This document shows, piece by piece, positions 18,109 through 18,190 of a stretch of DNA of 64,000 bases. The stretch lies in the sequence record PP777464.1; one strand, written 5' to 3'. The number at the start of each line of letters is the position of its first letter. Position 1 is the stretch's first letter. A program made the translations under genes and the position numbers. A model generated the notes under the pieces. That model had not been told where the DNA came from. It saw only the letters and a program-made list of their open reading frames with translations, and searched no databases.

Positions 18109-18190
18109 CCGGGCGTATCTCAACGGTCTTCTAAACCGTCGTTAATCGAGTAACTGGAGTATGCAGGTTCGAGTCCTGTCGCCTGGGCCA
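18109..18190 (+). tRNA. D-arm-less tRNA-Arg(UCU)-like gene
   Basis: CCGGGCG/CGCCTGG acceptor + GCCA; ACGGT-CTTCTAA-ACCGT; T-arm GCAGG-TTCGAGT-CCTGT; only 7 nt where the D-arm should be. Confidence 0.75.

Follow-up and report, generated by a model that had tools for sequence, protein, structure and literature searches.

A tRNA-Arg(UCU)-like gene of phage tRNA clusters with a probably re-wired core

Phage tRNA gene clusters contain a gene that probably encodes a tRNA-Arg(UCU) active in translation and re-wired in its core; its class is found only in phage sequence. As judged by comparison of related sequences, the two strands of its D-stem would occur in reversed order along the chain, so that the anticodon arm would be nested within the D-stem. 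The copy studied here occupies 82 bases at 18109–18190 (+) of a 64,000-nt stretch of record PP777464.1 that was analysed as a whole (the window); this stretch matches Escherichia phage fEgEco12, a jumbo phage of the Asteriusvirus type, at 100% identity and has a G+C content of 35%. What appears to be new is the structural variant of tRNA itself: we found no published description of such a class in the full-text literature, a body of text to which most subscription journals do not belong, and a review of non-canonical tRNAs contains no phage case (PMC7609411).

The element, its neighbours and its detection

The element reads CCGGGCG TA TCTC A ACGGT CTTCTAA ACCGT CGTTAATC GAGT AACTGGAGTAT GCAGG TTCGAGT CCTGT CGCCTGG G CCA, and all the parts described below lie on the + strand. 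A 7-bp acceptor stem is formed by CCGGGCG (18109–18115, positions 1–7) and CGCCTGG (18180–18186); it includes a G3.U70 pair (18111 with 18184) and is followed by discriminator G73 (18187) and an encoded CCA, which together span 18187–18190. U8 and A9 (18116–18117) are TA in 110 of 110 family members. The anticodon arm ACGGT-CUUCUAA-ACCGT (18123–18139) has a 5-bp stem and a 7-nt loop with U33, the anticodon UCU (18130–18132) and a purine, A37, at position 37, while the T-arm GCAGG-TTCGAGT-CCTGT (18163–18179) carries the usual T-arm motifs. The acceptor stem, discriminator, CCA end, anticodon arm and T-arm are thus those of a tRNA. Between positions 9 and 26 there is no D-arm hairpin, only TCTC; the linker from the acceptor to the anticodon stem is 7 nt long (TATCTCA, 18116–18122) and 23 nt (18140–18162) separate the anticodon arm from the T-arm. 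The first-pass annotation of this DNA had already recognised the acceptor with its GCCA end, the anticodon arm, the T-arm, the short linker and the 23-nt segment, and every one of these is present where it had placed them.

The gene begins 4 nt past the end (18104) of a canonical tRNA-Ser(UGA) gene (18015–18104, +), which is called by ARAGORN and scores 59.6 bits with the Rfam tRNA model. No terminator lies between the two, and a promoter-like site (TTGGAA-18 nt-TATAAT with a TG motif, 17975–18004, +) lies upstream of the pair; it was found by a consensus scan with 10 of 12 matches and is putative, being a consensus match only. This arrangement agrees with the earlier proposal that tRNA-Ser and tRNA-Arg are probably processed together; they probably share one transcription unit, from which RNase P and 3' processing would free the RNA. 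Directly after the tRNA pair, three tandem paralogous 54-aa ORFs (MTHEEWMNDINFRYSGIG...) occupy 18212–18698 of the window, with overlapping stops and starts, and the copy number of these paralogues varies among related phages. Further on (22110–22263), two tRNA-Thr(UGU) genes lie adjacent, 7 nt apart, and differ in their acceptor and anticodon stems.

Standard tools do not report the element. With default settings, ARAGORN calls six tRNAs in the window, the rewired tRNA-Arg not among them, and Rfam with default filters, run on the whole window, gives no report at 18109–18190. Permissive filters let the Rfam tRNA model (RF00005) score it at 32.6 bits, the gathering score being 29, through an alignment in which the D-arm is deleted (15 model positions against 4 nt) and about 20 nt are inserted in the variable region. 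Two other ARAGORN solutions, a spurious 56-nt D-replacement-loop tRNA with other ends in the metazoan-mitochondrial mode and a poor 'tRNA-Asp(atc)' at a lowered threshold (-ps50) in which the anticodon hairpin is taken as a D-arm, were rejected because they break the covarying anticodon and acceptor stems. We attribute the failure of standard tRNA finders to the placement of a D-stem strand and the D-loop 3' of the anticodon arm.

The consequence is an annotation gap. The gene is unannotated in almost all matching GenBank phage records, and the few that carry a label say tRNA-OTHER (wV8, EU877232; Riker, PP738788), tRNA-Leu (121Q, KM507819) or tRNA-TERM (7t3, MK773491); in all, hundreds of GenBank records leave it unannotated or mislabelled. 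Felix O1 illustrates the effect: its genome paper expected a tRNA for the over-represented AGA codon and did not find one (PMC3185647), and the genome holds an unannotated rewired tRNA-Arg that scores 96.9 bits with a covariance model of the family. Since ARAGORN and default Rfam miss the gene, Felix O1 itself and many Felix O1-like, T5-like, rV5-like and jumbo phages have seemed to be without an AGA tRNA, and published tallies of phage tRNAs, and of AGA decoders reported as 'missing', are affected accordingly.

Covariation and the order of the core

Family members were gathered from IMG/VR by five scans with sequence patterns, in each of which another part of the sequence was left free, and are considered here as an alignment of 67 distinct sequences (A3), a listing of 74 sequences with an 8-nt connector and a wider set of 110. 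This way of collecting means that some 'invariant' motifs (GTATC, TTAA, GTAA, TGGA) are partly imposed. On A3, a four-helix structure is paired in 98.3% of cells over 20 pairs, with double changes at 18 of the 20 and in 385 cells, counts that are not independent events, the sequences being related by descent. The covariation score is 0.81, as compared with 0.20 for shuffles and at most 0.17 for slid-partner controls. Three of the four covarying helices are the familiar ones: in the acceptor stem 7 of 7 pairs covary and 99.4% of cells are paired (67 sequences), in the anticodon stem 5 of 5 pairs covary, and in the T-stem 4 of 5 do so, with G53-C61 present in 66 of 67 members of A3 and T54, T55, C56 and A58 of the T-loop invariant.

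The fourth helix, of 3–4 bp, joins the linker to the first GAG of the 23-nt segment. TCTC (18118–18121) pairs with GAGT (18148–18151); within it, C18119, T18120 and C18121 pair with G18150, A18149 and G18148, and these three are paired in 100% of the 67 sequences, always as Watson-Crick pairs. One pair occurs in A3 as UA40/GC15/AU11/CG1 and the next as CG54/GC7/UA6, and the normalised mutual information of both is 1.0, equal to that of the best canonical stem pairs. The middle pair, 24:11, is TA41/GC35/CG25/AT9 in the wider set of 110, and the helix is paired in 74 of 74 sequences of the listing made with no pairing filter. In the subfamily with an ACG anticodon the pair adjoining the anticodon stem is C.A or G.A. 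On comparative support, to which folding programs did not add, this helix is the D-stem equivalent, TCTC standing for canonical positions 22–25 and GAGT for 10–13: thermodynamic folding of the single sequence did not predict the short D-like helix (its MFE z-score of -0.61 is uninformative on the 23-nt segment), and RNAalifold on the alignment returned three helices only, this one not being among them. As the linker/GAG helix encloses the anticodon arm, the RNA has a three-way rather than a four-way junction.

A single base and a bulge complete this region. A18122, which adjoins the anticodon stem and covaries partially with the last connector base, would be the equivalent of position 26. The 8-nt connector CGTTAATC (18140–18147) bulges out where the anticodon stem gives way to the D-stem strand and is conserved as C-N-T-Y-A-A-N-N in its own subfamily; elsewhere in the family connectors measure 3–12 nt, and those of other subfamilies are unrelated in sequence.

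These data bear directly on the structure originally drawn for the element, that of a truly D-arm-less, mitochondrial-type tRNA with a GTTA/TAAC hairpin after the anticodon arm and with GGAGTAT paired back to the linker. Both pairings can be drawn in the window sequence, and the Rfam alignment is that of a tRNA with its D-arm deleted. The relatives speak otherwise. A T-to-C change in the hairpin stem is uncompensated among the 67 relatives, the closing pair being lost in 16 of 67 (a further 6 are gapped) and never restored, and the 3–5-nt connectors of other subfamilies cannot form the hairpin at all. If TATCTC paired with GGAGTAT, 26 of the 67 sequences would lack pair 12-51 and 7 of the 67 would lack pair 13-49; the competing helix with the first GAG is intact in every sequence. 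We therefore give the D-arm-less structure only a very slim chance. The description as D-arm-less is only superficially true, because the linker in fact pairs with the first GAG (18148–18150): covarying equivalents of the D-stem and the D-loop are present, in another chain order, rather than lost in the mitochondrial manner. Thus the idea of a rearranged tRNA architecture with a UCU anticodon holds, and the extra 3' hairpin and the back-pairing do not.

D-arm-lacking mitochondrial tRNAs, such as metazoan tRNA-Ser(AGY/AGN) (reviewed in PMC4394434 and PMC7609411), invite comparison. Like the rewired form, such tRNAs have no D hairpin between the acceptor and anticodon stems, a short 5' connector and a three-way junction. 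They differ in that the rewired form keeps a covarying D-stem equivalent, a full D-loop motif (GG and a candidate A20) and a canonical T-loop, comes from bacterial phages, is arginine-specific and has regular, G+C-rich stems.

The bases 3' of GAGT resemble a D-loop. The segment AACTGGAGTAT (18152–18162) would supply A14 A15, G18 G19 A20 and A21, followed by a U48-like base, and resembles the D-loop AATTGGATA of the canonical allele described below; likewise, the motif AAyUGGAGUA closely matches AAUUGGAUA from the canonical allele of phage ph0011. An AA start and an AT end occur in 110 of 110 members, GG is invariant and an A follows GG in 109 of 110, regularities that are partly imposed by the patterns; where the base was not imposed by the search pattern, the A directly 3' of GG (18158 in the window) is found in 66 of 67 members. 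Length changes in the segment are confined to the A15–G18 and A20–A21 stretches, corresponding to the alpha and beta regions. Ordinary D-loops vary in length in the same two stretches. Both elbow motifs of the D-loop and T-loop are retained, GG and TTCRA being invariant in A3.

The gene order that we infer is 1–7, U8 A9, [22–25], 26, anticodon arm, connector, [10–13], [14–21], U48, T-arm, 66–73. TCTC would take the place of canonical 22–25 and lead straight into position 26 and the anticodon stem; GAGT would take that of 10–13; the chain would come to it from the 3' strand of the anticodon stem and continue into the D-loop (A14 A15 G18 G19 A20 A21), which would join the T-stem via the U48-like base. 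Put in terms of the cloverleaf, the D hairpin would be cut open at its loop end and the nick at the foot of the D-stem closed. Only the connectivity would differ. The D/anticodon helices could still stack coaxially, and candidates are present for the contacts U8-A14 and A15-U48, for the elbow between G18G19 and the T-loop and for A21; reasoning from connectivity we consider that the re-wired core could keep the L-shape.

A non-canonical order of segments along a gene is also found in the permuted tRNA genes of the red alga Cyanidioschyzon merolae, which are circular permutations processed to canonical mature tRNA. In the rewired gene, by contrast, the 5' and 3' acceptor strands lie at the ends in normal order and only segment 10–21 is displaced. 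Since no simple cut-and-join restores the canonical order, the mature rewired RNA should itself be non-canonical. Departure from the 7/5 cloverleaf does not preclude work in translation, as exemplified by tRNA-Sec, tRNA-Pyl, allo-tRNA and the selC* tRNA-Cys (PMC7609411); these, however, keep the canonical order of arms and none has its D-stem strands exchanged.

A phage family with canonical alleles at the same loci

A 91-nt query matches 685 GenBank phage records at 82–100% identity, and in 249 of these the match covers at least 80% of the query. The matches include Asteriusvirus, Felixounavirus, Mydovirus and other rV5-like phages, Justusliebigvirus, T5-like Klebsiella phages, the Salmonella jumbo phage 7t3 and Streptomyces phages; the gene always lies within a tRNA gene cluster, and its sequence is identical among independently sequenced phages. 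The IMG/VR scans yielded 110 distinct sequences from about 146 loci on phage contigs, many from uncultured sources. A covariance model built from 67 members gives these 85–102 bits and canonical tRNAs at most 32 bits. Among 5,426 complete E. coli genomes there is no match, and an origin from the host or a prophage was rejected on this ground. In a set of 185,579 genomes, one per species, only 4 true copies were found, all on MAG contigs that bear tRNA arrays, and isolate genomes in this set contain none. The class is phage-only.

At its locus the rewired gene alternates with an ordinary one. Near-identical flanks in Asteriusvirus hold either the rewired form (the window) or a canonical tRNA-Arg(UCU) (ph0011, slurp01); similarly, in an unrelated lineage, the Ounavirinae, VpaE1 and Sf14 have the canonical gene at the locus where wV8, O157 typing phage 8 and Felix O1 have the rewired one. 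Judged by sequence and position, the two forms are alternative alleles. In relatives of the window phage the canonical allele is a normal 77-nt tRNA-Arg(TCT). As represented by ph0011, slurp01, VpaE1 and Sf14, it shares with the rewired form not only the locus and presumed function but also U8 A9, a 7-bp acceptor stem, a G/A discriminator, CCA, the T-arm and the D-loop motif AAyUGGA, whose last A is A20 or, in the rewired form, its candidate. The loop CUUCUAA of the anticodon arm is common to the rewired copy, Sf14, VpaE1, the T5-like phage Shivani and the host, that of ph0011 being AUUCUAA. The differences are that the 5' D-stem strand and the D-loop of the rewired form lie 3' rather than 5' of the anticodon arm, and that it has neither a D hairpin nor an ordinary variable loop, having in place of the latter a connector bulge of 3–12 nt. 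Derivation from the canonical allele by simple deletion of the D-arm was rejected, as the alleles differ throughout the region between the acceptor strands. Natural pairs of phages that differ mainly in carrying the canonical or the rewired tRNA-Arg allele offer a direct test of the benefit of re-wiring, if any.

The presence of a normal gene at the same place in relatives, together with the fact that most annotations skip the element, could be taken as signs of an assembly artefact, or of a pseudogene that arose by decay or rearrangement from the canonical tRNA-Arg(UCU) of the locus. Homologues with a normal D-arm had been named at the outset as what would overturn the first reading, and literally they exist (ph0011, slurp01, VpaE1, Sf14); the artefact or local deletion that they were expected to betray does not follow, since more than 140 independent contigs conserve the rewired form. 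The identical sequence recurs in independently sequenced phages, and every helix shows compensatory changes among the 110 distinct versions, whose contigs (about 146) come from phages that infect Enterobacteria or Streptomyces and from many uncultured sources. A truly broken copy looks quite different: a truncated version at L071:6111-6183, about 600 nt from a canonical tRNA-Arg(tct), is intact as far as GTAA, is unrelated afterwards and has no T-arm, and looks like a real pseudogene of the rewired class. We accordingly see next to no chance that the element in the window is a relic or an artefact.

The neighbouring tRNA-Ser(UGA) shows a local resemblance to the rewired gene. In the clade of the window its anticodon arm is nearly that of the rewired tRNA-Arg (18015–18104 as compared with 18121–18141), CAACGGTyTTGAAAACCGTCG and CAACGGTCTTCTAAACCGTCG differing at 2–3 of 21 nt, while in phages with the canonical Arg allele the stem of the Ser gene differs (CTTGT/ACAAG). 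This pattern suggests gene conversion, or a swapped segment starting inside tRNA-Ser, as the possible event at this locus. An origin of the rewired gene from the neighbouring tRNA-Ser, proposed on account of the anticodon stem that the two share in this clade, was rejected: the family is far older and wider than the clade.

Some members have unusual surroundings. In 7 of the 74 members of the 8-nt-connector listing (L024, L028, L037, L068, L069, L070 and L079), leader and trailer lengthen the acceptor helix to at least 19 bp and there is no CCA; canonical tRNAs in the same arrays have no such extension. Such long helices might act as a signal for processing, persist as a longer stem in the mature RNA or be left over from mobility. 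An HNH endonuclease gene (Pfam HNH_3) lies directly downstream of the rewired tRNA in the T5-like Klebsiella phage Riker and in the Salmonella jumbo phage 7t3, and a weak HNH signal is found downstream in the Felix O1-like phage warpig; the HNH genes have coordinates L004:1092-1601, L005:1100-1618 and L008:1044-1442 in three loci. In the window, no HNH gene lies directly downstream of the rewired tRNA. Such neighbouring HNH genes could explain a cassette-like spread among tRNA arrays.

Arginine identity and decoding of AGA

When the anticodon is left free in the searches, it is overwhelmingly an arginine one: the 110 members have UCU (81), ACG (19), CCU (5), UCG (2), GCG (1) and CCG (1), so that arginine anticodons are present in 109 of the 110 distinct members, and GCU (Ser) never occurs. 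In bacteria, the Arg identity set comprises A20, C35, U/G36 and A/G73 (PMC9976931). The window copy has C35, U36 and G73 (18187), with A18158, which directly follows GG as A20 does, as the candidate for A20, and the N-C-U/G anticodon is found in 109 of 110 members. In the 8-nt-connector subfamily the discriminator is G in 35, A in 34, T in 4 and C in 1, that is, a purine in 69 of 74, and 54 of the 74 genes encode CCA. The rewired gene also tends to be the only tRNA-Arg(UCU)-like gene in its array. Of 25 arrays that include it and have at least 15 tRNAs, just 2 show a tRNA-Arg(tct) in ARAGORN, and one of these two tRNAs is itself a divergent rewired copy. On the side of demand, AGA makes up 22% of the Arg codons in the long ORFs of the window.

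Taken together, the anticodons, the identity elements, the allelic replacement, the complementarity within arrays, the gap in Felix O1 and the codon demand are best explained by a working AGA/AGG tRNA-Arg, and charging by ArgRS is part of what we consider the best reading of these sequences. The suggestion, made early on, that the element is an AGA decoder thus gains ground: arginine anticodons, allelic replacement and array complementarity indicate that it is very probably functional. ArgRS would charge the rewired tRNA via A20, C35, U36 and G73, and the charged tRNA would read AGA (and AGG) for an AT-rich phage in a host poor in tRNA-Arg(UCU).

An RNA that has the anticodon loop of the host (CUUCUAA) on an unusual body, possibly a poor substrate for translation, might instead be a mimic or decoy: with no role in translation, it would titrate or block a host factor that acts on tRNA-Arg(UCU), for example an anticodon nuclease or some other defence directed at tRNAs, or have some other tRNA-like role. 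Phage tRNAs are known to counter tRNA-targeting defences (PMC10264068). We consider a mimic unlikely. A decoy for one target needs neither a covarying 7-bp acceptor stem, nor a G/A discriminator, nor an encoded CCA; it would not switch among six anticodons that are all arginine, and it would not replace a canonical tRNA-Arg(UCU) in situ or be the sole UCU tRNA-like gene in large arrays.

A subtler variant of the decoder reading concerns fidelity. G3.U70 is the determinant for AlaRS (PMC9976931), and the window copy has it, therefore charging could be ambiguous: the versions in enterobacterial phages would be functional tRNAs of altered or dual identity, charged at least in part with alanine, and AGA would be read ambiguously. 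The pair is present in the copies of the window, the T5-like and Felix O1-like phages, Mydovirus and 7t3, even though 1:72 and 2:71 vary among them. Only 9 of 67 family members have it, however, and all Arg determinants are retained, A20 in the form of its candidate. It is also found in the canonical phage tRNA-Arg(UCU) of ph0011 and Shivani, and so is not tied to the re-wiring. Dual identity thus appears improbable to us, and an arginine-specific decoder is the reading that we retain.

Why the rewired form is maintained admits of two answers. It may persist by neutral spread of a single rearrangement, carried between arrays partly by HNH genes, or it may be kept for an advantage, for instance if host or phage factors that know their target by the D hairpin no longer act on it. 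Thus agents that read this hairpin, whether a tRNA-targeting defence of the host or an attack on host tRNA induced by the phage, could fail to see the phage's own tRNA-Arg. The most far-reaching proposal, which we advance tentatively and think rather less likely to be right than wrong in its entirety, is that this is the first natural class of tRNA with a topologically re-wired core (D-stem strands reversed in the chain, anticodon arm nested in the D-stem) that is L-shaped, translates, is confined to viruses and to arginine, and is adaptive. An active RNA would mean that a bacterial elongator tRNA can do without four-way cloverleaf connectivity and, should the proposed core be correct, that one tertiary core can be built from a different strand order. 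Activity would also bear on tRNA folding, on the design of orthogonal tRNAs and on recognition by ArgRS, RNase P, EF-Tu, modification enzymes and the ribosome.

Individual copies depart from the arginine rule or from the one-gene arrangement. The sole exceptions to the former are L155, a rewired member with the anticodon loop CTGATAT (GAU, isoleucine), and L222, another rewired copy with an apparent 8-nt anticodon loop, TGTTCTAA. Two loci carry two rewired genes each, with CCU and UCU anticodons in L062 (12999–13077 and 13348–13426) and UCU and GCG in L082 (478–555 and 3326–3402); in the UCU copy of L082, GGC replaces GGA, which leaves it with no A20 equivalent.
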